Assembly: GCF_037042905.1 (NCBI RefSeq)
Contig: NC_087246.1
Span: forward strand, 45,570,001 to 45,634,000
DNA from: Lytechinus pictus
Taxonomy: Eukaryota
DNA: 64,000 bases
Reading direction: 5' to 3'
The position numbers and the translations under genes were made by a program. The notes under the pieces were generated by a model, which saw only the letters and a program-made list of their open reading frames with translations, had not been told where the DNA came from and did no database searches. Positions 4,977 to 31,206 of this stretch are shown one piece after another. Position 1 is the stretch's first letter, and each line of letters starts with the position of its first letter.

Positions 4977-5045
4977 ATGGAAAATTCGCCATGGAAACTG
5001 ATTTCTGATTCCATAGGGGATACAGAGCGATTCGAAGTGCCTCAG
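4977..5045 (+). CDS. FZ/EGF gene putative coding exon 1 (MENSPWKLISDSIGDTERFEVPQ)
   Basis: aggATGG start context, 23 codons, strong CAG|GTAAGT donor in phase 0 matching the acceptor at 9010. An upstream acceptor (ttcgcag, 4676) suggests a 5' UTR portion. Confidence 0.55.
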
Positions 5046-8000
5046 GTAAGTGCATTGTCAATCAGTGGCGTACCGTGGGTCACGGCATTGGAGGGGGGGG
5101 GGGGACACCAGCAAAAATTTTGAGTCACTTATTTGCTAGGTATACTGACCTAAGACGTTTTTAAGACAGTGCCATTAAACGGATATGCATCTCACTGATC
5201 AAATAATGCGAGCGCGAAGCGCGAGCTGAAAATTTTTTATATTCAGACCTTAAAAAGGGACATTATAACCAAGTTTTTGTAATCATGATACGTACCTGTC
5301 TTGCTAAACTAACAATGCGAGCGTGAAGCGCGAGCTGAAAGTTTTGTATATATTGACCCCAAACAGGGATATTTTTAGAGCCAAGCGCATGCTGATTTGT
5401 TAGAATTACTTCTAAACACACGAAGCACCGTTTGTAGTCATTGTAATCATGATTATCATACGCATCTCACTAATCAAATATTGCGAGCTAAATATTTAGG
5501 AAATTCAGACCTGAAGAGAGGCATTCTAATGCTTGTTTGTAGGAATTCACTAACCGAATGATGCGAACGCGAAGCACGAGCTGAAAATTTGTCATATTCA
5601 GATTAGAAAAAAGGACACTTTAAGACCTTAAAATGGGGCAATAACTTTAAGTAGTCATGAAAAAGAAGTATATGTCACTACATAAAACAATAATAACTCG
5701 AAGTGCGTGTATACTGACTTGAAAACGGGAGGTTTTAGTACAACAGGATCATATATCTCGTTAAACAGACAATGCGAGCACCCGGAACAATGAAGACATA
5801 TGCCCTGAGCAAATAATGTTTCATAAAGTTATGAAAAATGTTTCTTATGTAATATAATATAACATAACATAATTATAATGAACAATAATTTCTTCTTTCC
5901 CGCTATACGTTTTTTTTTCCTTTCTCCCTGTTTTTCTCCTTCCCTATTTTTTTTGCCAGTAGTTACGCCACTGTTGTCAATAATTCCATAATAACCCTTG
6001 CTCTCATACGAAGGAAAGTAAAGGGAAAAAGATAAGAGAGAGGGGGGGGGGGGGTTGAATCATGTCTCTGAATCCTTGCTGAAAGCAAAGCGATTTTATT
6101 TTTTTGAAAGAATAGAATGAAACGGAAATATCGAGGGGGCGCAACATAGCATGTCTGACAAATAAAATGTCCGAGAGTGAGAAGCGAGTGGGCAAAATTT
6201 ACCATTTTAAAACGAAAATGACATTTTGTGAGATATTTTGACATATAATAAAATGATCTCATATCTTACACATGTTCCTTTCAGTTTCTTTCTTTTAATC
6301 GTTTTTTTTTTTTTTTTTGGGGGGGGATCATGGAACTTTCTTTGGGGGGCATGACTCCTAGGCCCCCACCTGCACGCCAGTGAGTGATAAAAGCAATATT
6401 TTCACGCCGTTTTTATTCACTCGGGAGTGACGTAAAACACCTGGTTTAGAGTAAACCATACATATTTTTTTTTGTTTTGAATGTTCTATTTACAGATTGT
6501 ATTTCACTATTTTCCTGATAAACTTCACCTCCAAGAGAACCGACGCGACGTTAGGAATATTTTATACTTTCACCATTTATCGTTATGGCATTCGTAATCT
6601 AAATTATCTTTCCATTTCGAGATTTTGTTTCAGAATTCATTTCATAACGAATTTTCTCTTTATCCTAATCCCACTCTGTATCACTACACTGCTATAACCA
6701 GTTTGCATAACATAAACGAGCCAAAGAGGAAGAAATCTGACTTCTGATATTATAAAGGAAATATTTAATTTCCATACACATGTCTTAAAAATCAAAATTT
6801 TCTTTGACATTATATTATTTCCAATGAAAATTAATCTGTCTTTTTACGCAGACACCACATTAATTTTCTTTATCTATCTTGTGTTTTCTGAAGGGTTCCA
6901 ATTAACCTACTCGATGACAAAACAAAATAAAGGAAAAAAGAAAATAAAGAAAAAGAAAAAACACCCCGCAAAAAAGGAACCTACCATAAAAACACAATAC
7001 ATGGAGGGCTAAGTTGTAAACCTGACAGAAATATTTGATTAACAAAGAATTTTTCAATATCCTTAACTGGAAATACGTCTTTTCTATGGCCCTAAATAAA
7101 AGAATAAATATGAAGATATTCGTTTGAATACACAAAATTGGGATTGTTTGTTTGTTTTATTTTTATTTCTGCGTGACGCTTTTTTCCCAAATCAATAATG
7201 TCCGATTCTGATTCTTTCGTGGTTCAGTGATTCATATAGCCGTCGAAAGATGAACAAGTTAAACTTATTTCCAAATGACAAGACAAAACCACCTCCCCAA
7301 AAATATGGCAATAGATCAAGTGATCTTCTTTATTTATTTTCATTGTTCATCTCTGCGGGGAAACGGGGAGATGACTGTGTGCTAGTGACACGAACAGGGG
7401 TCGACCTTTTACATGTCTACATAATCGTAAATTATCAGTAAGCCATGTCTACTTTGACCCATAACGTAAGAGGGGGGGGGGGGGGGACGGTCTGAAACGA
7501 ACACACGTAGAGATCCGGAAGAAAATAAAATGACATGAGATTTTTAATAAAGCCAATTTTTTTATGCGCGAGTCAAAAGTTGCAGTCAAAATGTAATAAA
7601 CCAGTAGGTAATCATCTTTTAAATAACACTAGAGATCTTACATATTTAAATGAATGTACGCAACGTAAGCGTGGATGTGCGAGCACGTTTGTGTGTGTGG
7701 GTGGGGGGGGGTGGGAGTGGCGTCATTAGGCAAACATTTAAGAGGTCCAGACATGGCGTATGGGGCAAAATTTCTTAACAGCTTCGAGTGAGTGAAGCGA
7801 GCGAGCAAAAGTTGTGATCTTTTCAATACACAAAATCAATTTTTGCGATAGTTTTGGTAAATAATACAGAATATGATATAAACTTTCATCCCTTTTCCTT
7901 TCCATTCTTTTTCTTATTCTTATCCCCCCGTGAATCTGAACTTTAGTTTGATCTACTCCATGTTACTTTTTTTTTTTTTTATTGTTATATACTCGTGTAT

Positions 8001-11000
8001 TAAGTACCCAATAATTGATTTGTATATTTTCAAGGGGGACCCACACTTTACAAGCATTGCTTTTAGTGACCACCACCCTCATTTCAATATTTTCCATTTT
8101 AAAATAATGTTTTGGAAAAAAGTAAATTCTTTAATTTGTATTTTATTGTATTACTCGGTATTATGTTTGCATGCAAATGAAATAAGGAATTGAATTGCAA
8201 TTGAATTTAATATTTCTTGGTCGTGAAACTTTTTGAGAATTTATGCTCCCAAGTCCCCATTTCTACTCTAGTTGAGAAGTACGCTACTTAACACTCGTAT
8301 CGCCTCACATTATTTCGTGTGTCAAATAGTAATTGTTTAACAATATATATTATCCATCGTATCATCCATTCATCGACGTTTCGTAAAAATAGCCAGAAGA
8401 GTAAATAACCGTTTCGTCTAAACCAATCTAGTCTATGATCTGTCCGTTCATCTACCATCCATGTCTGCTATTCGGTTTACAATCTATTTGTCCAATTTCA
8501 GTCAGCAAGGCACCTAGCATGTCTTAATTAATCAAATCCCTGATAAAATGTTGCTCTATATCGATGATTCGGTCTATAGCTTCATCACTGTAATTGATCT
8601 GATATTAATTCATCTAGTCATGTTTCGTCAGATAAGTGAATGGTCAAATGGTAAAATAACCATTTCGTTTTTCAGTATAAATACCATTTGACCTAATGGC
8701 TATTTACTTTGATACAAACTTATTATTCAGGACACCACAAGTATAAAACAAGAGCTCTATGGGATCCGCCACTAGATTATACATAGATCACATGGATGTG
8801 TATGATCTATGAATGATATTAATCTTGTGATGATATAAAAAAATCCATACCAGGATAGAGGAGAGAACAGTGAATTTTCAGATATCGATCGAGAAATTCG
8901 GCAAGGTTTTGTTATCCGTCATTCTTTATCTGTTAGGTATTTTATTTTCATTTCCGAAAAATAAATTCATTGTTTGAACATTTTGTTTTGGTTTCCATCT
9001 TTCCATCCAGATGTATGTATTGCCATGGGAATGTGACCTTACGCCACCGACGATTCAAACTATAAATTCAAACAGTTACAAACCGTCCAATCATAGGAGA
9101 CGTACGAGACAAGTTCAGAACTCGAGAGCTACTATTCTCCAATCGGAAGGAGGGTTATGTATCTCGTACTGTCAATGTCGATCCCGAGGTTCTGCTATTG
9201 CTTTCAACATCGTACTTCTTGCTACACTGGTTCTCATTTTTACTGTGGTTTCTCTTCTGGTTCTAGCATTGTATCAGAGTAGGTATATATGTTTTGAATG
9301 ACGTATAAGGAATCTGATTAACAACGTTAGAAGAAAAAGTATTAAAAAACAATAGAAATCTGACAAAACACTTAAGAATATATGATCAATAATTACATTT
9401 AACGTTTTCTCAAAAATGCTGTTGCCGTTGGGACACAACTGGAAATTATGAAATATTGAACTGCGAAGTCTGTTGAAATATTAAAGCTTGATAGCCTATT
9501 TTGTTTATGATACTACAGTGCCATTTGTTCGTTTTGTTTATTTTTGTTCAAATGGTTCGAATTCATAATATCCCGTATTCTGTCGTAGGTATCACAAATG
9601 TACATGTTACTTTAAAGAGTATCAAGAACAACATTTTCTTGAAATATAAGTATATATAAGTTCCCCCTCACACTTCTTATTTTCTGTTCGAGGATCACAC
9701 TTTCAGATAGAAGCAAACACTCCAGGTCTGGAGCCATTTGACGCCACAACGATTTCAGATTCGTTAACCGGTATTCCTATAAACTCGTCAAAAACTCCAG
9801 GATTTGAACCACCCGAAGATTCGGTTCACAATTTTGCAACCTCTTCGAGACCCGAAAGTACCAATCATGCTGAAGCAATAGCAACCGTTTTACCCACAAC
9901 TCCATTCGAAATTACGCAGGAAAATGGTAAGGAACGTATTTTTAAAACAGTTTATTTTATTTTTTTCTTAAAATGAAAAACGAATCATACAAGCAAGTCA
10001 CTGAAAATATCAAATGATGCAATTTATTGTAAAATAATAAAGTCATGACATTGTGAACTTTCACAAAGGTGTTGATCAATTTGCAAGTACAATGTGGGTA
10101 ATATTCAAACGGGCCTTTAGAGATAACGACGTTATCTGTCACTATTCTTTTGGAATATCAATTTCTTTTGAATATGATTATATCAAAATCCTTGATTGAC
10201 TCTTTTCAAATATGTGAAACTGGAAATAATCTCGCATGAGTTCTGGTACAGTAGGCCTACATATCATGCGATAGGTCTACATTCATTAAACTTTTCTTGT
10301 CCTAAATAATACAGATGTAACGTCATCGGTTCTGTAATTTGTATAATTATCTTGATTACTATGGTTTTAGTTCAATACATTTGTAAAGAGACGTCGTTCC
10401 ATTGTTTTAAGCACTATATATACATGTACATGTTAGCGGATTTAAATATCATTGTAAAGTAAATATTTATTTTTCTTCCAACTTTCATTTTTCATACGTA
10501 GTATATAAATCAATAATAAAGTACAAAACATTGAATATGAATACAGAATTTAAATTATGCGAGGAGAATGCATCAAACCCAGTATTGTGTAGGGATACGC
10601 CTGTAACACTATAGGTAAACAACAGTTGTTGTGTAGCGTTGATTTTTATCCTTTTTGTTTCTAATGCAAGCTAGGTAATCACCAACACCACCTCTACAAC
10701 CCTACCACTAATTTCATGTACCATTCGTTTGATTTTTGCCACTTTTTTGTTTCGTTTGTACTATTTTTTAATTATAACAAATATAGGTTGTGTCCCAATA
10801 CCAATAATTAGCTGTCGCAGATACCTCAGATACACCACCACTTTCTTTCCAAATCGGTTTGGCCTTGGGGAGACTGCGAGTGACGGCGCAAATCTTTACT
10901 ACCAGTTTTCGTTTGATATTGGAACACATTGCCATCCTGATGCCAAACGACTACTGTGCCGCATCCTCTTTTCGACCTGTTACCAGCCTTTCATCTTGGT

Positions 11001-14000
11001 CGACCCCGCTCCTCTTCCTTGTCGCTCTCTTTGCGAAGACGTCGGGACCCGTTGCGTCGAGAATAGATCTTTCAACGAGACTTGGAATAGAATCTGCGAG
11101 ACAATGCCCGAATCAAATAGTGAAGATGTGTGCTTCCGTAGTTCCTTGACATCCAACCAAGGTAGGTTATCGAAGTTAGAGACTAACTTTTCCTGTTTTA
11201 TTTGTTCCAGACCAATCTAGTTTTTTTATAGAGTATTGAGGGAAGGAATGTTTGTGTGTGTGTGTGCGAGGGAGGTGAGGTTATAGTTCTAGATATTGTA
11301 ATGAAATATGTTTCTGGTACTAAATTTGTATTTTCTAGCTTATCTTCCTCTGATTCTTCTTCCCCTTGTTTTCGTCATCATCACCATTATCATCACTCAT
11401 CGTTATCATCATCATTATCATCTCGTCAATTTCTTCTTCTTCTTCCTTTTCACCTTCTTCATCTTGTTGTTGTTGTTGTTCCCCCTTCTCCTCCTCCTTT
11501 TTCTACTTTCTCTTCCCCCCCCCCCCTTTCCACCTTTCCAGTGGAGCAACAGTCACATTGACCACTGTATCATGTATGTACTTCTTTCATGTCTATTGCT
11601 GCTAAGACGACCCCATGACTACCTCTACTTTCTACTTAGTATACTGCAGCTGCTACATGTACTTCTACTTCTTGCACTACTCGTTGTTCTACCTCATCAC
11701 CACCATATTCCATCATGCACCACTGTGCAACCTAGTTGCTTCAGCAGACCCGAACGCTCTTAGCACTGATTCTACACTTTTAACAAACGGTTGAGACTGG
11801 GCTTCCATTTTCTGCTTTTAAAGAAATAGTAGGAGCATCACCATAACTTTACAACTACTCCTGTTTATTGCAATGATTTTGTACACAGACACACATCATT
11901 TGTGTTCCAACTCGTCCTGCCAGAATGGTGGGATCTGCTTCGAGGTCAACGATCATATTCTGTGCCGATGCCCAGACCCATTCTATGGAATCAGTTGTCA
12001 AAATGGTAAGACGATCAACTATTTAATTATTTGGTTGTTTTTTACAACAGTTAAGTTTACAACGAGGATTTTTTTCTCGCGAAATTGGATTTGTTAAATG
12101 TGGGCTGTTTCCTAACGATAAGATCAAAGTATGATCTTGCGACAAAAAATAAATCAAAAGCGCTGATTCAAATCTCTTACATGCCCATAGTTTCCATGAC
12201 CAGATGACGTATCAATAAATTGTCTGGTAGACATACAAACTTGAGACATGAGACCTGTCCAATTTATCCCTATAGATAGGATGCTCATTAAAGATATGTA
12301 CATGTCTAGCTTTGGGATAAAAAGATATTGGGAATGAAATCTAAGGACTAAATTATGAATGGTGAGGTAATGGAAAATGTTTAATGTGCAAACATAACAT
12401 GATGACTGGTCGATCGAACTTGTCTACAATTTGTGTATCTGTTTCAGTGATGATTGATGAATATTCTAAAATAATTATGAGGGATTGTATATATTGTAAT
12501 CTGTGAAAATGAGGCGAGGATAGCGTTGCTTCCGACAGCCATTGGGCATCACCATATCTTAAGAGTTTTATCATGTGATATACAGAGTTTGAAGACCCAT
12601 GTGCTGTGAATCCGTGCCTTAATGGAGCAACCTGCGAGAAACAACTCTCCCCGTTTGGTTTCTCCTTTTATATCTGTCTTTGTGCGCTGAACTACCACGG
12701 ACCCAAGTGTGAAAAGGGTAAGTGCGTCACTTTAAACATTGAATATTGATGTTAAAAACAATACAAAGTCTATGCTCAAAGATTTGATACTGCGAAATTG
12801 ATGTGTCCATTCGATTTCGGAGTGCATCATAATTTTTCCAAATTAATTAGTTGGTCGATCAGTGCAATTTGAAACCAAGTCGATCCTCTTACACTGAAGG
12901 TATTGATCATATTGATCACTTCCTTCAGAAAGATTACTACCGTCGGTCATCTGTATTACTTACTTACAAACAAATATTTCACGAAATTGTGAGGACTTTG
13001 TTCATTTGTCAATTGCAATACCACATGGACCATGTCACAATTTAAACACCGCACCAGTGGCTATTGACACATGTATAATGGGACTTAGTTTCAAATAACT
13101 GTAGTAACATTTTCATTTTTCTTTAGAACAGTTTCTAATTATGCGGCCGAGGAATATATCTTACATTCAAGTTTTGTAACATGAAATCAGCAGGATAACG
13201 TCGATGTTATGTCATTTCTGTTATAATCCATTTTTCTTTGCAAAAAATATACTGATAATCACTCGCTTTAATGTATCTAAGTTTCATATACATGTATAGT
13301 AAATCATATCGAAAAACGTCTCATACACCCTCATACAGCTCCCCCCCCCCCAAAAAAAAAAAGCCCCTCTGTCATAGGCTGAAGTAATGCCAAAATGTGG
13401 TAGTATTTTCAATCAAAATGTACAAGAGTAGAACGCGTATTTCATAATCTAACTTCTATAAAAATTTCATTAGTCTCGCTTCGGCGGTTTTGAATACACA
13501 CCTTGTTCATGTTGTTACGCCAGCGTGGCCAGTGAAAAATATCAAATTATGCCAGAGGAGCAGCGAAATTATGCCAAACCGTTTTGGACTCTAGGATTTT
13601 CCACAGGGGGGGGGGGGGCAAAACCGTCCGCCAAAATAATTTGACAAGCAAAAAAAAAAAAAAAAAAAAGGTCTTCAATCACAAATAAAGGATTTCGTTC
13701 CAGAAAAAAAATTGACAAGCAAAAAAAAAAAAAAAAAAGGTCTTCAATCATCAAATAGATCAAAATTATGCTAAATATGCTATTATTATGCCAGGTTCTT
13801 TGCTTAAAAAAGTCTAATTATGCCCCAAATTATGCTGAAAGGGTCGAAATTATGCCAGAAAAAAGGTCTAATTATGCCAGAATTATGCCGGCATAATAAA
13901 TTATGCTGAAAGGGTCGAAATTATGCCAGAAAGCATAATTGTGCCAGTTCTGGCAACGTTGTGTTACGCAACAGTGATGCATTTCAGGCCATTCCAAGTT

Positions 14001-16736
14001 TGCAACACTGCTGTATATCTGCACTGTCTTTAACATGTTAAATCCCACCTTACCATCCATGATCTGAGCAGGGATATTTCCCTGATCAATCCAGACTCAT
14101 CAAATCATAAACTTGAACATGTGCAGAAGGGTAATAACCGTCAAAATTTTTTTTTTTAATGATTGATAGGGGATCAGTGCACCAACTTAAAAGAAAATAT
14201 GAATGATGGATAGGTAAATAAGCTGAACAATGAAGAGCAAACTACAAGTGTATCACACTTTGCGAAAACGAACATTACTTGTGAAAATTGATGTTTTATT
14301 TCATTCAAAAAGGTGCAATGAATTAATTTGAGCCCATTAACTTAATGATAAAAAAGGAATGAAATCAAGAATGCATTATTGTTGGAATTGGGCATGAAAC
14401 ACACGTGACATTTTGTCTCTGTCATTGTGCATTTCCCATTATCAAACTTGATATTAATTGTCAAGTACTCTTGCTGCCCTTCATAACCTGCTCAAGGTTG
14501 GGATTTGATGAACCTGGTTAGAACATGGAGATTTCCTGGACAGCTCAGGAAAGTAACTGATCCGATTCTGAATGATCAAAGGGGGGTGATATGCTAGGCA
14601 GTGCAGAACCAGCAGTGGTATCAGTACTGCATGTATGCAAACTTGGAATGGGCTGAAAAAGCACCATTATTACATAATATACTGTGTATTCAAAACCGCT
14701 GAAGCGAGACCGATGAATCTTTTTTTATAGAAGTTAGGACTTGAGATGAGCTTCCTATTACCATACATTTAATTGAGAGTAATTTTCATTTTTTTTTATT
14801 AATTCACCCATATACCAGAGAGACTTTTTTTTTTGGGGGGGGGGGGGGAGCTGTAGAGGTAAAAACTACTTTTATTCATTACAATCCGTTAATTGGTATT
14901 TCTTTTTATCCAGTGATAGGAACATATCCTGACCGAGACACTTCTGTTGCACATCATCTTCCAGGTAATTATAACTGTAATATCCAGTTCCGTATCTAGC
15001 CGGACTAAACACAATAATGGAGGGGTCAACCACCATGACAACTGTCATGCTTTTGAACAAAGTTGACCACTTTGTGTGGTCTCATACATGCACTTCATAT
15101 GGCCCTTGACAGAAATGGCGTTTCCAATTCCTCAAAGCGCGGCAAACACCGAATCGTAGATGCATTATGAATATTTTTCACAATAATTTTTAGGCAATCC
15201 ATTGATCCATTCCCGAATTCGAACCCATATGTCGGGAGTACCATGTGAACAAGACGAGATCTAGAGAAAGTGGTGCATAAGAATAAAAAAAACTTAAGTG
15301 TAAGCCACCTTGTGTACAGGGGGTATATGTCACTGCCCTATTCGTGGTTGATTCGTATTGGTAGCCCAGGTCGAAAATCCTTATAATAATAATATAAGAA
15401 TAATAATTAAAAAATCAAAACAGAGAATTATTCTTGAATTATGGTGCTGGTAACAATAGCACCGAGTGGTTTGTAATGGTATATAGATAGTCAGAACCAT
15501 TATACTTTACCAGTTTCTATTGATTTCTATCGGTTTTACTTTTCTTCATCATGCTGTCGTTAAATACTAGTACCGATGGATTTTCATGGTTTTGACTGCA
15601 TGGATATCTAAACCAGTTGACTCTTCAGGCTATTTACCATGTTTACAATCTCTACTGGTTCACCAGCATACACACAGTAGAAACTAGTAGAATGCTACTA
15701 CTGATTATTATTTTTTTAATTGGAACGTTGAATTGTGAGGGTGCATGCTCAAGCAACGGTCCAAATGTGTAAGCTGCTTTTTGAGGGTAATCAGGGATGT
15801 TCTGATTTAAAAAAAATCTGTAAAAGTCCCGTGATGCAGAATTAGGCCTTTGGGAAACGTTGATTTTTTGTTAAATAATCATCTATACGCGGCTGAGTAT
15901 AGGAATATGAAACGACCAAAGTTCATGGTAGTTTATTTCTAATAATCAAAGAAAAAAATGTAATAAATTATTTGTGTCGTCCAAAGGGGTCGAATGAGGA
16001 TTTTTGGCAGTTTTCATTCATTTCGGGCACAACTGGGTGGAATTTCTTGATGTGAATGACATACTAGATAGGCTTAGGTATTGGCAACAAATGGGCGTTG
16101 TGGCGTGCGTCTGTAATCCAAGCTACATTGGGGGAAGTTACAATTTGATGCAGAGGTTCGAGTCCTGGTCACGTCTTTCGTATGGTGACATTAAATGTCG
16201 GCCCAAAATGTAAATTATTAAATCACGTCTATTAAAACTCAAGCACACACGCGCGCGCCTGCTCACTTACAAATACTCCCGTGTTTATCTCAATTTGGCA
16301 AAGAGATGGACTTTATTTGGCGTCCTTATACTTATTAACTCAAGTTTCTTTCTTGTCAAATGCAGGTACTGCAAGTAATGATGTGTCAGTCAATTGCCAA
16401 GTCATCCCTGAAGAGTGCCATTCCATCTTGTCCTACAACAGATCACATGGAATACTCGTTGGTAGTCAAACTACTTTCTTCTCTCCATGGCCTCTGATCG
16501 AGACGTACGTAGCCTGCAGCCCTTCAGCGGCTCGTGTTCTCTTCTGTTCGACGGTGTATCCAACTTGCTCACAGGATCCTCAGATTGCATACGGTGAAGT
16601 GTGTAAAGAAGTATGTGAAAGAGTGAAACGCGACTGCGAATATTCATTCGAAGTCCTCAATCTACCATACATTGATTGTAAAAAGCTGAAGAATCGTAAC
16701 GATTCCATTGGAATGCCATGTTTGGATTCCAATTAG
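4977..16736 (+). CDS. Type II single-pass membrane protein: cytoplasmic N-terminus, TM, S/T/P stalk, Frizzled CRD, EGF, EGF, Frizzled CRD (~521 aa, 7 coding exons)
   Basis: Exons 4977-5045, 9011-9278, 9693-9926, 10787-11161, 11889-12005, 12586-12717, 16366-16736 join through GT-AG sites in compatible phase: 1566 nt, no internal stop. Two 10-Cys Frizzled CRD patterns, two 6-Cys EGF patterns and one hydrophobic helix (AIAFNIVLLATLVLIFTVVSLLVLALY). Confidence 0.8.
5063..5973. mobile_element. Non-autonomous hAT-like element (gcgagcgcgaagcgcgagc internal repeats)
   Basis: TIR CAGTGGCGTA...TACGCCACTG; exact 8-bp TSD TTGTCAAT at 5055-5062 and 5974-5981. Confidence 0.88.
9011..9278 (+). CDS. FZ/EGF gene exon 2, transmembrane (signal-anchor) helix
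   Basis: ttccatccag acceptor; basic residues followed by a ~25 aa hydrophobic stretch; A|gtaggt donor, phase 1. Confidence 0.75.
9693..9926 (+). CDS. FZ/EGF gene exon 3, Ser/Thr/Pro-rich stalk
   Basis: Single open frame (SHFQIEANTPGLEP...PTTPFEITQEN), polypyrimidine tract before the acceptor, G|gtaagg donor. Confidence 0.7.
10787..11161 (+). CDS. FZ/EGF gene exon 4, Frizzled cysteine-rich domain 1
   Basis: CVPI..C...YTTTFFPN..HCHP..LLC..C..PCRSLC..C..C..C (10 Cys); tag/gtaggt borders. Confidence 0.9.
11340..11720. repeat. Low-complexity trinucleotide region (CAT, CTT, GTT, CTA)
   Basis: Read directly. Confidence 0.85.
11889..12005 (+). CDS. FZ/EGF gene exon 5, EGF-like domain 1
   Basis: CSNSSCQNGGICFEVNDHILCRCPDPFYGISC; phase 1-1 exon. 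Confidence 0.9.
12586..12717 (+). CDS. FZ/EGF gene exon 6, EGF-like domain 2
   Basis: DPCAVNPCLNGATC...YICLCALNYHGPKCE; tacag/gtaagt borders; not in the ORF track. Confidence 0.9.
13337..14853. mobile_element. Large degenerate foldback element in intron 6 of the FZ/EGF gene
   Basis: Paired inverted blocks at about 13337/14853, 13444-13500/14683-14739 and 13973-14015/14622-14670. Confidence 0.7.
13521..13961. mobile_element. hAT-like MITE with aattatgc repeats, nested in the foldback arm
   Basis: TIR CAGCGTGGCCAG/CTGGCAACGTTG; exact 8-bp TSD TGTTACGC at 13513-13520 and 13962-13969. Confidence 0.85.
16092..16204 (+). mobile_element. 7SL (SRP RNA) Alu-domain-like head with B box; probable SINE fragment
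   Basis: TGGGCGTTGTGGCGTGCGTCTGTAATCCAAGCTAC resembles the 7SL/Alu 5' end; GGTTCGAGTCC B box downstream. Confidence 0.6.
16366..16736 (+). CDS. FZ/EGF gene terminal exon, Frizzled cysteine-rich domain 2
   Basis: 10-Cys CRD (CQVIPEEC...LFCSTVYPTC...VCKEVCERVKRDC...C...PC) followed by TAG. Confidence 0.85.
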
Positions 16737-17025
16737 ATTAATTTTCCCTTATACCCCTGTAGTGTCACAAATGTTGTGTCGGTCTATGACAAACACCAAT
16801 CAAAGACGGCGTTCGCAGCTTGCACGATATAGTAATCTGAGAGACTCATGAGAGATCACTGGAAGACCAGTGAAAGTTCACTCTAGAATAGTACAATTTC
16901 AGTAAGACAAGAAGTATCAATCAGTTTTTCAGAGATCTTTAAGAGTTTTATTTTTGGGGTCATTCTACAGAGATGGCCAATTTTTTGTTGTTGTGATTTT
17001 GGAAATAGATTACCGAAGTGATGAC

Positions 17026-21139: not shown

Positions 21140-23128
21140 ATAAGGATATCATATCAGTTGGTTGGCTGAAAGCTATATCATGGCACTATGTCACATTGTG
21201 TTTGATATGAACTTGACTAATTAGTCTAATCAGGCTGTTTGACCACCCAAGAATTAAACTATAAGATAGGATTGTACATTTCAATCAAAATGAATTTATT
21301 ATATATATCAATATTGCCATTATCGTGGCTCACAAGCTGTCAAAACATAAAGATCAATAAACCAGTATCAAATTTGGAACAATCTGTCTCAATTCAAATT
21401 AGTATGATCTGTATAATCTAATTATAGTGACCTGCAATTCCTATTCAAGGAAAGAGCATAAATGCTGTGTTTATGAACACAATCTATTTAGTATACGTAT
21501 ACCGACTATGGGGAAAGTTCAGTTTCTCAAGTCTTCACTTATCACCCGTTGTCAGACGTCAAATGTATCAATGTTCAAAGTGATCATGCGATGCTGAAGA
21601 AATGGATGAGCAGTGCCGAACGGAAGACGATATGAGGATGAACTCGCGAATGCGATGAACTTGCCAAACCAGAAGAAGAAACCGGATAACCAAGAACTCG
21701 GGACTTTCCCGTGGAGAACGTAGCAATCGCAGAACGTCGCAGAACGTCGTAAGACGTCGAAGAGGCCGTGAACGTCACAATTAGACGTAGGACGTAGATA
21801 ACCTTTGCCAAACGAGGAGAACCATGGCGATAAATGGAAACGTGGAGACACGTAAACGTCAAGAGACGTGGATAAATCATCGAGAAAACGGCCGTCTGGA
21901 AGAGAATACGCAAAGATTGACAGCCTACAGTCCATATCATTTCTGTTATTCAAATGGTTTATAATAAGGTAAATGCTGAGTACATTCAAGCAGGTCACTG
22001 AACTTTCTATACTTGCTTTCGAGTACCTATTAGCAGTGTTCTTACTCTGAACAAGTGAAACATTAATTCTGATAAAGTGTCATATAAAAATCACCACTCT
22101 CCTAAGATAATAAGCGTTTAAACAAAAGATTCAACATTTGTAATAAATAGATTAATTGTCTTGATAAATGACAAAATAGCTTTCAAGTTTCAAATATTGG
22201 ATAGTTAAGTCACTTCCTAAAATAACAATTTCATGACGTGTGTAAGACATATAAATGTATCATGAATTTCTTAATAGAGTGTAAGACATAATATCCCGGC
22301 ATAATATCTGATATCTTACATGTAGATGTATGTCTTACATCTTCAAATAGCATAATTATCCTTCGTCATGTTCAATTGTAATACAAATTAACATCACAGT
22401 TTCTAAATATTATCAGTCTGCTGAACATTTGCTTGCATTGCCCTATGCAGTGCACACACACAATAGCTATCAAACACAGTGAGGGGTTGCCTACTCTAGC
22501 AGTTAGGTTTGGTCTATTCATAAACAAATTAAGGAGTTACTCAACCAAATAGGCTCTTCCACTGGCTAGTAAAGGGGAGTTTGAATAAGCTTCTGACACA
22601 CTATACTAATAACTTTGACCTGCTATGGTTTTTAGATGACAATGGTTAATCAAACCACATTGCTATCTTATAAAACATATACAATACATTTGATCAGGGG
22701 GTTGAATAACAACCCACATTTTATAGGCGGAATGGGGGAGGGGAGGGGGCGACGCGGTACCCTGTGCCCCCTGGCGCGCCCGGGGGCGCGGCACAAAGAA
22801 ATGGAAAAAGTCATAACTGTAATGCAGCGTTGTTTGAGCTTCCTTGGAGCTGAACCCGGGAGCTAAAATATTAACGATCTATATAAAGCCATGTAGTAAA
22901 AACAGAAAGAGTTGAGTTTGGTTACCTTTTTTATTGCAGGTGTAGGCCTATGCCTTTTTATAGCACCCTTTGTCATATGACAAATCCGCTAGGCCTCGCT
23001 TATTACACTCATGTGTATGAAAACAAGAGCCCGAAGTCCAACCATAGAGCTATTAATTCAACAAGGCTGAGTTCGCGTTTCATTTGTGTACTTCCGCCTA
23101 TTGGATTACACTAGCTACCTGCACTTTC

Positions 23129-23295
23129 ATGGAGCTAGCTAGCTACGAACATGAACCTGCTACTATGGGACTGCACACTCTAGCTGACTACGAAAGACGT
23201 GCACGAGAAATTATATCTGATAGTGCATGGGTGTATTACGATTACGGAAGGGAACGACGATGGTGCCTCGAAGACAGTGTCAAAGCATTTTCAAG
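23129..23295 (+). CDS. HAO-like exon 1
   Basis: [10 protein letters not shown]...YYDYG...AFSR; AG|gtaact donor. The start could be the second ATG. Confidence 0.85.
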
Positions 23296-26200
23296 GTAAC
23301 TTAACGTCTTACTTTATCCCCTTTTCCCCCTATACTTAGGCCAAAGTTAAGCCCTAGAGCTACTGAGTTAGACATACCATCCATGCATATTCAGTTTCAA
23401 AACACCCGGTCAAAACATTGACCCGTTTTAGCCGGGTCGAAACATCCTTACAACTAAAAATGATATTCAATCAATTGCATGTCATATTATTAGCTCATTA
23501 TTTTTTATCTTGTGATAATCCATAACTTCATAGTCTTCACCGGAGTCTACATTAATTGAAGTCTTAATACTCCCCAAGTTACGAATTCAAACGAAAACCC
23601 CAGGCGAAAACCGCGAAACCGTATACGAACCTATATACCTTATTCACATCACTGCAGCTTGTTAAATCGATCACTGCTCGTGTGTGCACTCGCTTTGTGA
23701 TGTTTACGGGGATGTTTATTATGTACAAATAATGTGCGATTGAAAAAGCTTGAACCATATTCATGGAGCAGCTGTTAATAGCTCTATGCTTGAACCTTGC
23801 AGCGGACGGAGTCCTATACGGCAGCGTAATAATGCCTCATTTTGTGCATATGACTCGTACATGCAATGATGTGCTGACATAAGTTGGCGAGAAACCTGTT
23901 GTTCCGTGTCCCCCCAAAAAAAAAATTCTTCGACATGTTTGACGAGAGTGCTAAAAAGATAATCGCGCCACCTTTTTAAAGGTCAAGTCCACCCAAGCAA
24001 AATGTTGATTTGAATAAATAGAGAAAAATCAAACTAGCATAACACTGAAAATTTCATCAAAATCGGATGTAAAATAAGAAAGTTATGGCATTTTAAAGTT
24101 TCGCTTATTTTTCACAAAACGGTGATATCCACAACTCAGTGACATGCAAGTGAGTCAGTCGATGATGTCCATCACTCACTATTTCTTTTGGTTTTTATTG
24201 TTTGAATTATACAATATTTCATTATTTACAGATTTGACCAAAGGGACCAACTCGACTGAACCATATAGTATTCTAATTCTAATTCTAATTCCACATGTAT
24301 AGGGAGGAATTAATCACTGTTTTACTTGACAATGAAGAGAAAATTAGAATATTTCATATAATAAAATACAAAAGAAATAGTGAGTGGATGATGTCATCAG
24401 TCTCCTCATTTGCATATACCGACCAGGATGTGCATATAACTGTTTTGTGAAATTAATAAAGCGGAACTTTGAAATGTCATAACTTTTTTATTTTACATCC
24501 GATTTTGATGAAATTTTCAGTGTTATGCTTATTGGATTTCTCTCTTTATATTCAAATAAATTGTTAGTTGGGGTGGACTTGTTCTTTAAGCTTATGATGC
24601 TATAGTTTCTTCATTTAAGGTCTCTTTTGTGCTCACCGGGTGCCAATTTTGCTTGCATGTCCCCTTTGACCAATGTCATGCGTAGATAATGAAAAAAAAA
24701 TTTCTTGATAACATTCTAGGGGCCTTTCGTTAATGATTTGGTATGAAAAATAAAGAATCGTGACAAACGAGGGTCGTGGCCCAGAGAAAATCCGGTGGGT
24801 AAGAAATGACAGCTTTCATTTCTCTAGCTGAAGATGTTATGTTGAAGCAATAAACTGTGGTCCATTTTTGTCTCGCCTGCATAGCAGAGCGAGACTAATA
24901 GGTGCCGCTTTTCCGACGGCGGCGGCAGCGTCGTCAACATTGAAATCTTACCCAATTAAACGTTAAGTTTTGGAAATATCATCATAACTTACAAAGTATA
25001 TAGACCTAAAACTCTGACATAAGGGTAATCAATTATTACTGAACATCCTGCCTAAGTTTCAGGTCACATGATCAAGATAAAAATCCTTTAGGGTCAACGA
25101 ACTAAGACCATGTGTAGAGAATCAACATCGAACGTAAGGTTTGGAATGTCATCATAACTTAGAAAGTATACGGTATATAGACCTTAGACTTTAGTTCATT
25201 AAACCTGGATATATGGAGTTTCAAGTGACATGACCAAGGTCAAAGGTCATGAAGGGTCAATGAAATTAGATTATGTTAGCACTGATGCTATATTGAATTG
25301 CATAATGCGGGCTCTCCACTTGTGTTTTCATAAACAAATACTCATAAAGGTACAGGATAAGGAGTCAAGTTCTTCAAGATGTTTCGAAGCGGAGTTTAGC
25401 AACCACCGTCCTTGGACAGCCCCTCAAGTACCCGATATGCATCGCCCCCACAGCACTCCACACCTTTGCACACCGAGGGGCCGAAAAGGAGACGATCAAA
25501 GGTACCCATTTTGTGTACACTACAAATCATTAGTCAAATAACCAAAAATGTCCCCGCGAGTAAAATTATTGTCTGAAGAGAAGGCCCTATCTATCCGGGG
25601 CACTTGTCGTGGAGTTGCCCTATATAAATATGGCCTATGGATATTCAGTTTTTTTTTTTTTTTTTGGAGGGGGTACAGTAAATCGAGGGTACATGTATGT
25701 TTCAAGGTCTAAACCCATACCCAACTCTCCATACATCAATTTTCGACTCATATAATTGCCTTCACTTTTTGAAATATCTCTTGTCTTCGTCCTGGCCATC
25801 TCTGAGGTTCGACCTCAAGACCAAGGCCAATAAATAGACGTCCGAATCTCAAAGACAAGGCCAACGACATACGTTTTAGCATCGAGGCGCACAGTACTGC
25901 ACTGAACTTTCTTACACGTCACACTCTAGAAAAAAAAGGTTTACCCATACTGGGTAAAATGGGAACATGCATATTGGTTGGGTAAAAAGATCGCGTCAAT
26001 ATTTTGTACATTTTACGCAATGTTGCGTTGAAATAGCCCCTGCAAACATGCATGTTCCCTTTTTACACAATATTGGGTAAAATTTTACTCAGTGTTTTAA
26101 GAGTGCAGAAGAAAAAACAACCAAGACATATCGACATATGATTAAATCAATCGTGGGATTAAAAGATTGACCAAGTATTGTTTCGAAATAAACCAATTAT

Positions 26201-29200
26201 TATAGCATTCAAATTTTGTGTTTTAGGTGGTGTGTCGATCACTGTTCTAAGGACACCCCTGATAAATTCGCATGACTTGTTTGAACTCGATTGCTCATAA
26301 AGATTTAGATTAGGGTTATGGGCCAGTGTTTGAACAGTCAGATAACTATTGGGCAAAAATCTGTATATGTGTTTACACAAAAGGAAGGTCTCCAGCATCT
26401 TCAGTTCAATTATCATCAAATTTATTGCAAGGCTGACATTATTACAAAATGGCTGTGTGATTGTCTTCAGATAAGGCTCCGCAAGGTATCATTTTTCATG
26501 TTACTGCCATTTTTGTTTTGATAACCCAGATTATTATATTGCTATTTGTATTATTATCATAATTATTGTTTTTTTTTTTTTTTGGGGGGGGGGGTCTTTT
26601 ATATTATTTCTTTATATTTCTTTGCTTGATTTGACGGCCTTTTCATTGTCATTCTGATGGTTCTGAGACTATAGGCGCCGCTTTTCCGACGGCGGCGGCG
26701 GCGTCAACACCAAATCTTTACCAAAGGTTAAGTTTTTGAAATGACAGCATAACTTAGAAAGTACATGGACCTAGTTCATGGAACTTGGCCATGATGTTAA
26801 TCAAGTAATACCAAACATCCTGCCCGAGTTTCACGTCACATGACCAAGGTTAAATGTCATTTATGGTCAACGAACTTAGACCATGTTGGGGGAATCAACA
26901 TCAAAATCTTAACCTAAGGTTAAGTTTTTGAAATGTCATTATAATATATGAACCTAGTTCATGAAACTTGGACATAAGGTTAATCAAGTATTACTGAACA
27001 CTCTGCTTGAGTTTTACGTCACATGATCAAGGTCAAAGGTCATTTAGGGTCAATGAACTTTGGCCGACTTGGGGGTATTTGTTGAATTACCATCATAACT
27101 TTTGAAAGATTATTGGTCTAGTTCATAAAACTTGGACATAAGTGTAATCAAATGTCACTGAACATCATGTGCGCATTTCAGGTCACATGACCAACGTCAA
27201 AGGTCAATGAACTTTGGCCATGTGGGGGGGGGGGATCTGTTGAATTACCATCATAACTTTTAAAGTTTATGGATCGGATTCATGAAACTTGGACATAAGA
27301 ATAATCTAGTATCTTTGAACATCTCATGCGAGTTTCAGGTCACATGACCAAAGTCAAAGGTCATTTAAGGTCATTGAACTTTGGCCATTTTAGAGGTAAT
27401 TATTAAATTGCTGTCATAACTTTCAAAGTTTATAGAATGATATAGTGTATAAAATGTGGATACAGGGGTAATCAAGTATCACTGACAAGTTTTAGGTCAC
27501 ATGATCGAGGTCAAATGTCAATGAATGTAGTATTGTATCATTATATGAATAGTGTTTTTTGTGAATATTTATTTTATAGTAGTTTTCAAAGTCAGCACTG
27601 CTGCTATATTGAATCACGTGATGCAGGTGAGACCGCCAGAGGCATTCCACTTGTTTAATTGGCATTTTTCAAAACATCAAACTGCTGAGTAGAGATTTAA
27701 AACCGGTATATAGGAAGGTGCAAGCTATTAAAGTTAGTTCCACCTCGGGGAAAATGTAATTTTTAGTAAAATCTTACAATTGAAATGGTACTGTCATCTG
27801 CATTTTCAATTGCGTTAACCGCTCGCCTCGCATACAAATCCGAAAAAAAGAGGAATGAATATTAGTTTTAATAACTATGTCTCGATTGTATTTCCAGCGT
27901 TATCTGTATTATTGGATTGATCTCCTTTATTTTAGGAAATATCGGGGAGAGGGGAGAGGGGATGGGCTTCATATACTAAGCGATTATTTTTAAATATGTA
28001 TTTCGTTGTTCAGATATGACACAATACTTTACGAAGTGATTAATGACATTCAAACAAACTAAAGATGATACATTTACATTGAAATTTGAAACAGGCGCCG
28101 AAGCTGCGGAAACGTTGATGGTGATGTCTGCTAGTTCAAGCTTTCCAATGGAGGATGTGGCCGCTGCAGCCCCTAATAGCCACCGGTGGATGCAGATATA
28201 TCCATACGTAGATCAAGAACTCACGTTAAGTTTTATTCGGAGGTCGGAGAGTCTGGGGTTCAAAGCCCTTGTCGTGACGGTGGATTCTCCAGTACGAGGA
28301 CTAGACAGTAGAATATCGGAAGCGTTCAGCCACCCTGACCTTGTGAATAACCCAGATGCTCGGTAAGTTACCATCTAAAGGCCAACTTTTACGACACGAG
28401 TCACGCGCGCGCGCTATGTTTCACTTTGTTTTAATCGTTCTTTAGCAGATTACAGACCTGTCTTGATATAGATAGACGTTGATATAGGCCTACTGTGTAA
28501 ACTTTAAAGTCATTTTGCGGACTAAATCTGTCCGACAAAAAATGTAAGACGGAGTAAAATTGTATTCTTTAGCAGTATAAGTGATAGGGCTTTCAGCATA
28601 AGTATCTGAAATCCCTGTACCATACTTCTTGTAAAGTAACTTATTTGAGAATGATCGTGCACCTTCATTTAGCTTTTAGAATATATTGTTCAACTGGTTT
28701 ATAAAGGTTTTGGAATGTTCGGGGTTTATATACTAGTAAATTTTGAATTGAATTGAATTATGCAGAATGGCGGCTTTGGAAGTTGATATCCCTTCCTCGC
28801 GTGAAGCCTTAGAAAGGGGTGATCACAAGCTCTACGAATATGTGAGGGAGATGCTGTATAATCCGAAATCAACCTGGGAGTATATAAGATGGATCCGAAG
28901 CAAGACTACTCTACCAGTCGTGTGCAAGGGTATACTAACGTGTAGGTACTCCACTGGATATTAAATTGAAAGCAAACCCGAGTATGTATATAAGTTTTAT
29001 AAATAAACCCACATTCAAGAAATGTTGGTTGTAGTAGGTCCATGGTTTGGTTTAGATTCCTTGACATGAAGGTCTAAAATGCGCCAAGAGTCATAACAGA
29101 TACACAGTTACTTGCATGTAATCAAGGGTATTGCTTCCATGGGAGACTAGTAGTAGTAATATTTTTGTAAGGATGTTTTATTGTATTCTCTCAAATCAAA

Positions 29201-31174: not shown

Positions 31175-31206
<32 letters not shown>

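Follow-up and report, generated by a model that had tools for sequence, protein, structure and literature searches.

A Type II Membrane Protein of Lytechinus pictus with Two Frizzled-Type CRDs: A Candidate Membrane-Tethered Wnt Decoy or Presenter

Introduction

Whether sea urchins carry a cell-anchored protein that captures ligands through Frizzled-type CRDs and yet has no means of signalling is the question raised by a gene on the + strand, at 4977-16736, of the window analyzed here, which is the whole 64-kb stretch of Lytechinus pictus DNA. A preliminary description, made from the sequence, had proposed for this gene the layout TM-stalk-FZ-EGF-EGF-FZ; all the features it described were found where it had placed them, and the translation was identical to the RefSeq protein XP_054764786.2 (538 aa, named "notch homolog 2-like"). 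The double-FZ gene is thus already predicted in RefSeq, and no study of it was found, as our literature search returned no paper on LOC100889782 or on the gene itself. Its CRDs are also missing from the published list of S. purpuratus CRD proteins (PMC5778778).

Sea urchins are a leading model of Wnt-driven axis patterning, with sFRP-1 already a working part of the network. If Wnt binding were true, a cell-anchored antagonist or presenter would join the echinoderm Wnt toolkit, and this question is directly testable because L. pictus is genetically tractable. If the protein does not bind Wnt, it would represent a clean natural corin-like stem without the protease, informing what protease-linked CRDs recognize.

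Gene structure and transcript evidence

The double-FZ locus is a real, transcribed, single-copy L. pictus gene of eight exons (Table 1). All introns were found to have GT..AG borders, and exons 3-7 (234, 375, 117, 132, and 51 nt) were each of phase 1 on both sides, in agreement with the symmetric exons noted in the preliminary description. RNA contigs from two runs of two studies were spliced at the joints FZ1 to EGF1 (11161>11889), EGF1 to EGF2 (12005>12586), EGF2 to the micro-exon (12717>14914), and the micro-exon to FZ2 (14964>16366). In addition, one RNA contig had a loose end at the FZ1 acceptor whose sequence matched the final 30 nt of exon 3 (stalk), and a contig reached 323 nt upstream of FZ1, corresponding to the stalk exon plus 89 nt. 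Among the seven junctions proposed for checking, RNA therefore supported four together with the link of the stalk exon to FZ1, whereas the joints of exon 1 to exon 2 and exon 2 to exon 3 were taken from the RefSeq model, the S. purpuratus exon sizes, and the 323-nt upstream contig rather than directly from reads.

Table 1. Features of the double-FZ gene (positions in the window).
Feature	Position	Strand	Description
Coding exon 1	4977..5045	+	Start codon and 23 aa of cytoplasmic tail (MENSPWK...VPQ); donor CAG|GTAAGT, phase 0
Exon 2	9011..9278	+	Remaining cytoplasmic tail (basic HRRRTR, RSR) and signal-anchor/TM helix; phase 1 at end
Exon 3	9693..9926	+	78-aa Ser/Thr/Pro-rich stalk, one NxS sequon; phase 1-1
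Exon 4	10787..11161	+	FZ1, first Frizzled-type CRD, 10 Cys, residues 192-306; phase 1-1
Exon 5	11889..12005	+	EGF-like domain 1, 6 Cys; phase 1-1; Pfam EGF 3.6e-5
Exon 6	12586..12717	+	EGF-like domain 2, 6 Cys, O-fucose-type C-x4-T-C motif; phase 1-1; Pfam EGF 1.2e-6
Exon 7	14914..14964	+	51-nt micro-exon, 17-aa linker VIGTYPDRDTSVAHHLP; phase 1-1; RNA joints
Exon 8	16366..16736	+	FZ2, second Frizzled-type CRD, 10 Cys, residues 426-534; CLDSN end; TAG 16734-16736
Minimum 3' UTR	16737..16929	+	Two RNA contigs, each 165 nt beyond 16764, unspliced past stop

The S. purpuratus ortholog showed the identical eight-exon structure with an intact frame (exon 1, 69 nt; exon 2, 268 nt; exon 7, 51 nt). 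The first exon is thus kept as a 69-nt exon there and in RefSeq XP_054764786 too; it is possibly optional, because S. purpuratus isoform X2 begins instead at the exon-2 ATG. A second L. pictus record, LOC129279068, lacks the 51-nt exon 7. No close paralogue was found in the L. pictus genome.

Continuation of the transcript into further exons, the outcome that the preliminary description had named as fatal to its proposal, was not observed, as the RNA contigs ran unspliced through the stop for about 165 nt; the closest AATAAA downstream of the stop in a poly(A)-signal scan lay at 18104. No exon encoding a protease, LDLa, SRCR, or SEA domain was detected across the 64-kb window, and the FZ1 exon was the sole match of a corin-like protease in a tblastn search against it. 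The next + strand gene encodes a hydroxyacid oxidase (FMN-dehydrogenase), the same neighbor in L. pictus and S. purpuratus. These results bore out the claim that the product has no 7TM, kinase, or protease part.

We also asked whether the locus might not be an independent gene of this form but part of a longer one, an erroneously joined prediction, or a pseudogene in decay. The first two joints without direct reads are in line with this idea, as are two raw RNA-seq runs (about 6% sampled) with zero reads over the exons, a result that is uninformative on splice sites and suggests restricted or low expression. However, the spliced contigs of two studies passing through the stop, the eight orthologous exons with an open frame in S. 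purpuratus, the end position shared by the full-length orthologues of six species, the window free of further domain exons, and a dN/dS of 0.18 for the whole protein between L. pictus and S. purpuratus largely refuted it, and we regard it as very improbable.

Topology and domain layout

The product is a type II membrane glycoprotein of 538 aa (N-in orientation) without a catalytic or signalling domain, in which a cytoplasmic tail is followed by a signal-anchor, a Ser/Thr/Pro stalk, a Fz CRD, two EGF domains, the linker, and a second Fz CRD directly before the stop. The N-terminus contains no hydrophobic segment, and the single one in the protein (residues approximately 85-111) is preceded by RSR and HRRRTR, with both CRDs C-terminal to it, as is the entire disulfide-rich, N-glycan-sequon-bearing part. 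Because this one internal helix follows 84 non-hydrophobic residues of the cytoplasmic tail, it was assigned as a type II signal-anchor, in accordance with the earlier proposal of an anchor after basic residues and no signal peptide. The stalk, which had been called mucin-like, is indeed rich in Ser/Thr/Pro (37%), flexible, and O-glycosylatable, but only moderately mucin-like. Pfam Fz and EGF matches together with Cys counts of 10 and 6 confirmed two complete CRDs around two EGF modules, and the protein terminates four residues past Cys10 of FZ2, right after the second CRD as described. No Pfam match was obtained for NTR, CUB, or LDLa in the protein or for a trypsin-like protease domain in any family member, and the domain search of the protein found no LNR, ankyrin, or DSL part.

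Comparison of L. pictus with S. purpuratus gave dN/dS values of 0.10 for FZ1 and 0.09 for FZ2, and of 0.34-0.41 for the stalk and linker; with 0.34 for the stalk exon, constraint on the stalk is relaxed. EGF2 gave 0.39. Constraint is therefore strong on both CRDs and weaker on the other parts, the EGFs included.

This distribution bears on the possibility that the protein belongs with the adhesion or Notch/Delta-type EGF proteins, the EGF pair doing the work and the CRDs being structural. The DLK1, Notch, and Delta EGF chains among the Foldseek matches of the structural model, the O-fucose-type C-x4-T-C motif of EGF2, and the four to seven EGFs of the starfish members are consistent with such a role. 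It is nevertheless quite unlikely in view of the constraint on the CRDs (0.09-0.10) versus EGF2, the presence of just two EGFs in echinoids and one in sea cucumbers, and the lack of LNR, ankyrin, and DSL parts. Notch itself is a type I protein with a long EGF array, LNR, and ankyrin repeats, whereas the double-FZ protein has two EGFs and none of the rest. The public "Notch-like" name, which reflects EGF similarity alone, is misleading and hides the identity of the gene.

Properties of the two Frizzled-type CRDs

Both domains scored above the gathering cut-off of Pfam PF01392 (32.1 bits), with 51.9 bits (1.3e-13) for the FZ1 exon and 36.7 bits (6.8e-9) for the FZ2 exon, and each has 10 Cys residues at conserved spacing, placing both among the Frizzled-type CRDs. 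Alignment by hhalign to canonical Fz CRDs gave probabilities of 99.1% for FZ1 and 97.0% (E 8e-11) for FZ2. FZ1 matched the PDB sequences of the Fz8/Fz7 CRDs at 1e-8, with sFRP3 also among its matches, and its closest in-genome relative was the CRD of the L. pictus Fzl5/8 receptor (locus L002; 31%, E 2e-11), to which FZ2 was 27% identical (E 2e-7, BLASTP). In an AF2 model of the ectodomain, the FZ1 part had a pLDDT of 70-86, and Foldseek matches of the model included the CRDs of FZD5/4/8/7 at a TM of about 0.65, some of them solved with palmitoleate. FZ2 modelled alone from an 8-row alignment (pLDDT 58.8) was too poor to use and gave only chance-level helical matches (Z <= 4.1; Foldseek pdb and VIA-align pdb_via_wide), so that its fold assignment rests on sequence profiles.

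The residues contacting palmitoleate in the Fz8-XWnt8 structure are Q71, F72, P74, L75, M122, Y125, and F127. At these seven positions, FZ1 was aligned with Q, F, F, D, N/R, F, and E, and FZ2, aligned to Fz8 and Fzl5/8, with S, P, P, L, F, L, and L, five of which are apolar. By these alignments, at 27-31% identity and with an FZ2 model too poor for a check in 3D, the lipid groove would be partly polar in FZ1 and hydrophobic in FZ2. For the W-P-L-I-E motif of FZ2, MAFFT was two columns off HMMER/hhalign, and the concordant alignment of HMMER, BLASTP, and hhalign was followed. The C-terminal C-L-D-S-N of FZ2 corresponds to C-M-D-S-N in Fzl5/8. From these patterns, a lipid groove is more probable in FZ2 than in FZ1, for which a role in protein contacts is more probable.

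Several observations counted against Wnt capture. Three of the seven contact positions in FZ1 are occupied by Asp, Asn/Arg, and Glu, and the groove helix of this domain carries two N-glycan sequons (NRS and NET). In neither domain are the groove residues conserved within the family, the invariant residues being the cysteines, P-N, L-P-C-x-S-x-C, and P-E-S...C-F. A weakly resolved CRD tree grouped FZ1 and FZ2 with corin-like and LDLa-linked CRDs, away from the receptor CRDs. Furthermore, corin, MFRP, MuSK, and Smo are among many CRD proteins without a proven Wnt role (PMC6747125). The likeness of the asterozoan TM-SEA-FZ head to a corin-like protease and the restricted or low expression suggested by the raw RNA-seq runs count on this side too. 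Complex prediction for the ectodomain and the product of the final exon of the L. pictus Wnt gene L016, which holds both the CKCHGLSGSC thumb and the finger at the C-terminus, scored 0.00 with the partner poorly folded, a result that speaks neither for nor against binding.

Family across echinoderms

The protein had been proposed to be lineage-specific, a scope to be widened to echinoderms at large: besides the echinoids, relatives were found in one holothuroid and one ophiuroid, and also in asteroids, where the layout is altered, so that the family covers four echinoderm classes. When queried with the family alignment, a word-indexed search recovered the echinoid members only; those of sea cucumber, brittle star, and starfish were obtained by an exhaustive HMMER search and a search with the Patiria protein. 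The brittle star member has the layout TM-SEA-stalk-FZ-EGF-EGF-FZ, the starfish members TM-SEA-EGFs-FZ-EGF-EGF, and the sea cucumber member TM-stalk-FZ-EGF-FZ. The SEA domain, present in the ophiuroid and asteroid members and absent from the echinoid and holothuroid ones, contains G-S-V-[VI]-V, the motif of the SEA self-cleavage site. FZ2 of the sea cucumber lacks both Cys3 and Cys8, presumably one disulfide pair of the CRD; such a paired loss is the pattern expected of a folded, working domain. The family thus displays stepwise domain shuffling across the classes in the presence of SEA, the number of EGFs, and the presence of the second CRD, made easy by the phase-1 exons.

Relation to corin-like proteases and other CRD proteins

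The preliminary description had set the protein apart from corin and MFRP. It is indeed neither of them, but the corin-like proteins proved nearer than assumed, the TM-SEA-FZ head of the ophiuroid and asteroid members being collinear with that of an invertebrate corin-like protease. Corin and the corin-like protease of Haliotis rufescens, XP_048248347 (TM-SEA-Fz-Fz-LDLa x2-SRCR-trypsin), share the type II anchor and two ectodomain CRDs with the double-FZ protein, and in the ophiuroid and asteroid members a SEA domain carrying G-S-V-[VI]-V sits after the anchor and ahead of the first CRD, as a SEA domain does in the protease. The brittle star member was collinear with the Haliotis protease over TM and SEA (26% identity, E 1e-8) and FZ1 (31%, E 5e-13), and L. 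pictus FZ1 matched Haliotis Fz1 (57 bits, 36%) better than its own Fzl5/8 CRD (44 bits, 31%), with common C8-C9 spacing, loop lengths, and an L-P-E-S motif. By contrast, LDLa, SRCR, and trypsin domains occur neither in the double-FZ protein nor elsewhere in the 64-kb window, and the double-FZ protein has two EGFs between its CRDs and, in echinoids, no SEA.

Orthology of FZ1 to the corin-like Fz1 was examined and found no support. A reverse search of the L. pictus genome with Haliotis Fz1 favored a 612-aa ORF on another chromosome piece, which we presume to be a Frizzled receptor (58 bits vs 50 for the present locus), so that the similarity amounts to generic CRD likeness; the CRD tree gave no sister relation either, leaving resemblance only.

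Corin uses its Fz domains to aid the recognition of pro-ANP. The double-FZ protein could likewise be related to the stem of corin-like type II serine proteases while lacking the protease itself, with CRDs serving non-Wnt protein recognition. The collinearity and FZ1 features above, the putatively polar, glycan-tagged FZ1 groove, and the many sea-urchin CRDs joined to membrane proteases argue for this explanation, while the failed reverse best hit, the tree, the SEA-less echinoid and holothuroid members, and the apolar groove pattern retained by FZ2 argue against it. On balance, we consider it rather unlikely, if worth keeping in mind. Candidate partners of the CRDs would then include pro-peptides, components of the matrix, or membrane proteases regulated or decoyed by the protein.

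Among the other CRD proteins, MFRP is similarly of type II with a C-terminal Fz CRD and no catalytic or signalling domain (PMC6747125), but it has CUB and LDLa modules and one CRD, whereas the double-FZ protein has none of these modules, two CRDs, and EGFs. Frizzled receptors such as Fzl5/8 have the CRD fold that is predicted for the double-FZ protein, and FZ2 resembles Fzl5/8 in its W-P-L-[VI]-E motif and in ending with C-[LM]-D-S-N; the receptors' seven-helix bundle and Dishevelled-binding tail are absent from the double-FZ protein, which has the opposite orientation (N-in, single pass). The sFRPs (sFRP1/2/5 and sFRP3/4) are, like the double-FZ protein, candidate Wnt sinks or carriers with a Frizzled-type CRD and no 7TM, but they are secreted by way of a signal peptide and combine a single CRD with a netrin (NTR) domain, whereas the double-FZ protein is membrane-anchored with two CRDs and no NTR. 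The sea-urchin sFRP-1, lineage-specific with four tandem CRDs and one Ig, antagonizes Fzl5/8-JNK signalling (Khadka et al. 2018, PMC5778778). It too is echinoderm-restricted, domain-shuffled, and multi-CRD with no signalling part, but it is secreted and has neither the EGF nor the TM of the double-FZ protein. Shown to modulate Wnt/Fzl5/8 signalling, it provides a working precedent for a sea-urchin multi-CRD Wnt modulator (PMC5778778).

Proposed mechanism

We tentatively favor, at somewhat less than an even chance, the reading that the double-FZ protein is a non-signalling cell-surface binder that captures an extracellular ligand via its two CRDs; a putative role as Wnt decoy or presenter is plausible. 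The stalk would hold FZ1, the EGF pair, the short linker, and FZ2 out from the cell surface, where the constrained CRDs may capture ligand on the producing cell, most likely a lipid-modified Wnt and failing that a free lipid. The bound ligand would either be kept away from the true Frizzled receptors, the protein then acting as a tethered sink comparable to an sFRP fixed to the membrane, or be concentrated and then handed over. The brittle star and starfish versions may be shed because their SEA domain carries G-S-V-[VI]-V, and the echinoids would have swapped this domain for a plain stalk.

A more specific and doubtful version, less probable still than the protease-less stem discussed above, would be an echinoderm membrane-tethered Wnt/fatty-acid trap built on an ancient corin-like protease stem without the enzyme, in which FZ2 holds the lipid and FZ1 the protein face of the ligand. 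Such a trap would shape the availability of Wnt in a cell-autonomous manner in sea urchins and could be released through SEA in brittle stars and starfish. A GPI-anchored Frizzled CRD has been used as an artificial dominant-negative, of which the putative echinoderm trap would be the natural counterpart.

Gene structure and transcript evidence

In the window, a stretch of A+T-rich animal DNA, all eight coding exons of the gene had canonical AG and GT borders, and each of exons 3 to 7 was flanked by phase-1 introns. The two Frizzled-type cysteine-rich domains (CRDs), FZ1 and FZ2, contained ten Cys residues each, and the two intervening modules, EGF1 and EGF2, six each. The exon reading in the preliminary description was accurate down to the micro-exon, and its observation, the phase-1 borders included, was confirmed in full.

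Coding exons of the L. pictus gene in window coordinates
Exon	Position	Strand	Length (nt)	Border signals	Encoded part and remarks
1	4977-5045	+		AG/GT	
2	9011-9278	+		canonical AG and GT	
3	9693-9926	+	234	canonical AG and GT	stalk
4	10787-11161	+	375	canonical AG and GT	FZ1; Pfam Fz 1.3e-13
5	11889-12005	+	117	canonical AG and GT	EGF1; Pfam EGF 3.6e-5
6	12586-12717	+	132	canonical AG and GT	EGF2; Pfam EGF 1.2e-6
7	14914-14964	+	51	canonical AG and GT	micro-exon; 17-aa linker
8	16366-16736	+		canonical AG and GT	FZ2; Pfam Fz 6.8e-9; TAG at 16734-16736

Contigs of two RNA runs from different studies (X1 and X2) and two raw RNA-seq runs were mapped against positions 10775-16764. The GT..AG joints 11161>11889, 12005>12586, 12717>14914 and 14964>16366 were present in contigs of both X1 and X2, indicating that the five 3' exons, including the micro-exon, lie in one RNA. 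A contig starting at the FZ1 acceptor carried 323 extra letters upstream, of which the final 30 match the 3' end of the stalk exon; this extension is longer than the 234 nt of that exon, so the contig must enter another exon upstream. Two contigs crossed the stop codon unspliced and extended 165 nt past the mapped stretch, and the RNA contigs showed no joint or loose end inside the last exon, so that the transcripts do not run on into additional coding exons after FZ2. Neither of the two possibilities raised against the gene model in the preliminary description, namely transcripts continuing into further exons and exons belonging to separate transcripts, was borne out. At 6% sampling, neither of the raw runs placed any read on the exons, and hence the expression of the gene is not ubiquitous.

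In introns 6 and 7, segments with many loose ends (13375-13974, 14575-14974 and 15975-16374) reached a contig depth of up to about 1,000-2,100 in both runs, and seem to represent dispersed repeats that are abundant and transcribed. All runs shared a T>A difference at window position 16144.

Membrane topology and domain arrangement

Residues 1-84 of the protein are cytoplasmic and non-hydrophobic, and the sole hydrophobic helix (residues about 85-111) is directly preceded by RSR, with HRRRTR further upstream. The helix is followed by a stalk of 78 aa (Ser/Thr/Pro 37%), FZ1 (192-306), EGF1 (321-352), EGF2 (360-396), the linker encoded by the micro-exon and FZ2 (426-534). All six N-glycan sequons lie C-terminal to the helix. 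Given the 32 extracellular Cys residues and the absence of a signal peptide, we infer a type II (N-in) orientation as the only sensible topology.

Orthologues and the echinoderm family

An exhaustive HMMER search with FZ1, supplemented by follow-up searches, identified orthologues in L. variegatus (XP_041457311, 28 differences), S. purpuratus (LOC100889782, 531 aa, 68-69% identity) and two Diadema species (unnamed proteins of about 523 aa), and all these echinoid proteins stop 4-5 residues past Cys10 of the second CRD. Mapping of the S. purpuratus protein onto its locus recovered the same set of exons, there 69, 268, 222, 375, 117, 132, 51 and 362 nt long. The TM-stalk-FZ-EGF-EGF-FZ layout was shared by the echinoids L. 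pictus, L. variegatus, S. purpuratus and Diadema. A 494-aa transcript-derived protein of the holothuroid Holothuria leucospilota was TM-stalk-FZ-EGF-FZ, the ophiuroid Amphiura filiformis protein XP_072038049 (804 aa) was TM-SEA-Thr-rich stalk-FZ-EGF-EGF-FZ-stop, and the asteroid proteins (Patiria, Asterias, Acanthaster) were TM-SEA-EGF(2-5)-FZ-EGF-EGF-stop, the second CRD being absent. The SEA domains of the family contain G-S-V-[VI]-V, which we take to be the SEA autoproteolysis motif.

In a quick maximum-likelihood tree of the CRDs, all FZ1 domains formed one group (SH-aLRT 94) and the echinoid and holothuroid FZ2 domains another (SH-aLRT 97), the ophiuroid FZ2 lying elsewhere on a long branch. 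In the simplest reading, the ancestor would have been a TM-SEA-...-FZ-EGF-EGF-FZ protein; echinoids and sea cucumbers would then presumably have dispensed with SEA, and starfish with FZ2. The lineage specificity initially proposed for the protein has to be widened from a restricted range to the echinoderms. Among the H. leucospilota proteins (P0049, P0039 and P0143), two neighbouring GenBank models, KAJ8020977 and the 'Cadherin-4'-named KAJ8020978, seem to represent tandem or truncated copies of the holothuroid member of the family.

Frizzled-type character of the CRDs and resemblance to corin-like proteases

In PDB sequence searches, FZ1 matched the CRDs of Fz8, Fz7, Fz2, Fz5 and sFRP3, down to 1e-8, with no Ror, MuSK or Smo match at E<0.01, and FZ2 matched Fz10, Fz8 and Fz5 at 4e-4 to 6e-3. 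Against canonical CRDs, profile-profile comparison put the FZ1 family at 99.1% probability (E 5e-19) and the FZ2 family at 97.0% (E 8e-11), and the closest relative of FZ1 within the L. pictus genome was the single-exon Fzl5/8 receptor. An AlphaFold2 model of the ectodomain, of middling confidence overall (pLDDT 64; 70-86 in the FZ1 part), had among its Foldseek matches the CRDs of FZD5, FZD4, FZD8 and FZD7, at TM about 0.65, as well as EGF chains of DLK1 and Notch. These results are evidence that both CRDs are of the Frizzled type. The L. pictus Frizzled-5/8 receptor, used as the same-species reference CRD, is an uninterrupted 577-aa open frame over the stretch read (locus L002, 1315-3048; G000:C1:23194451-23196184).

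The brittle-star protein was collinear with a Haliotis corin-like protease (TM-SEA-Fz-Fz-LDLa-SRCR-trypsin), with E 1e-8 for the anchor plus SEA and 5e-13 for the first CRD, and L. pictus FZ1 scored 57 bits (36%) against Fz1 of this protease versus 44 bits (31%) against Fzl5/8. The reverse search with Haliotis Fz1, however, found another open frame as its best match (58 bits versus 50 for this gene), and the CRD tree has no resolution at that depth. We therefore treat the stem of corin-like proteases, the nearest architectural relatives, as the closest known layout and as a resemblance rather than an established ancestor. In the 64 kb, a tblastn search with a complete corin-like protease matched the FZ1 exon alone and detected neither LDLa nor SRCR, trypsin or SEA exons.

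Selective constraint and putative lipid groove

Nei-Gojobori comparison of L. pictus with S. purpuratus, in which dS was about 1.1 and near saturation so that the ratios are rough, gave a dN/dS of 0.18 for the whole protein, 0.10 for FZ1, 0.09 for FZ2, 0.11 for EGF1, 0.39 for EGF2, 0.34 for the stalk, 0.41 for the linker and 0.23 for the cytoplasmic tail, with the two CRDs as the main targets of selection. FZ2 of the sea cucumber members is without both Cys3 and Cys8, which pair as one disulfide in Fz CRDs, and such a joint loss fits a folded, functional domain.

The palmitoleate contacts in the Fz8-XWnt8 structure, which we take to be Q71, F72, P74, L75, M122, Y125 and F127 of Fz8, were mapped onto both CRDs by HMMER, BLASTP and hhalign. 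In these alignments, at only 27-31% identity, FZ1 had Q, F, F, D, N or R, F and E at the seven positions, and its groove helix bears two N-glycan sequons (NRS and NET). FZ2, for which the model of the domain alone was poor, had S, P, P, L, F, L and L; it retains W-P-L-I-E, and its C-terminal C-L-D-S-N corresponds to C-M-D-S-N in Fzl5/8. On this evidence, FZ2 would be the better lipid-groove candidate and FZ1 the poorer. The groove positions vary among the family members. Wnt binding by the protein is put forward only tentatively, as a distinct possibility; a recognition role directed at a ligand other than Wnt, its main rival, seems somewhat less likely.

Among the Wnt genes of L. pictus, eight or more (loci L013-L022, on several contigs) have a last exon that by itself encodes the two elements that contact Frizzled, namely the acylation hairpin (CKCHG-x-SGSC) and the finger at the C-terminus.

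Relation to known CRD proteins

For S. purpuratus, Khadka et al. (2018, PMC5778778) count fifteen novel Fz-CRD genes of unknown function and show that one of them, sFRP-1, with four CRDs and an Ig domain, is an antagonist of Fzl5/8-JNK signalling; the CRDs of the present gene are absent from the CRD sequence table of that study, and no paper in the literature searched mentions LOC100889782. According to Agostino and Pohl (2019, PMC6747125), the known non-Frizzled CRD proteins are MFRP, CPZ, corin, COL18A1, SMO, MuSK and ROR1/2, most of them with no proven part in Wnt signalling. None of these shares the TM-stalk-FZ-EGF-EGF-FZ layout. The initial interpretation is supported in part: as far as seen, this non-signalling, membrane-anchored double-CRD protein matches no characterised family, whereas the narrow lineage specificity does not hold. 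It belongs among the domain-shuffled Fz-CRD proteins; its interest lies mainly in its testability within a Wnt model organism.

CRD shuffling is widespread outside vertebrates. Large unnamed poly-CRD proteins occur in many invertebrates (P0001 and P0004, Branchiostoma; P0003, Xenia; P0022, Glandiceps), one amphioxus protein of 6,305 aa combining 15 Fz domains with about 21 EGF-like motifs. In L. pictus, a tandem array of 14 or more Fz-domain exons, spaced at about 5 kb and with roughly 30% identity to FZ1, lies at G000:C1:11040030-11163993 (loci L003-L010).

Annotation and neighbouring genes

The gene is already predicted in RefSeq, though misnamed, as XP_054764786 (538 aa, "neurogenic locus notch homolog protein 2-like"). 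The window translation agrees in full with version.2 of this entry, whereas version.1 differs from both at four residues, R/M52, N/D159, I/T331 and Y/S403 (window 9155, approximately 10101, 11932 and the 14923 region), of which I/T331 makes or abolishes an O-fucose-type C-x4-T-C motif in EGF1. The L. pictus genome contained no close paralogue, the next best match to FZ1 being at 33% identity. The next gene downstream, at about 23050-32860 (+) of the window, appears to encode a hydroxyacid oxidase/FMN-dependent dehydrogenase, and the S. purpuratus orthologue is likewise followed by an FMN-dependent dehydrogenase gene (locus L011, 23449 onwards), indicating conserved local synteny.

Another L. 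pictus record for this gene, P0165 (LOC129279068, 503 aa), is without the 17 residues of the micro-exon, has a different first exon (MHAYL...) and about ten residue differences, and may represent either an alternative transcript or a haplotig. The S. purpuratus isoform X2 (P0167, 508 aa) begins at the exon-2 ATG. These two records suggest that exons 1 and 7 may be used alternatively.
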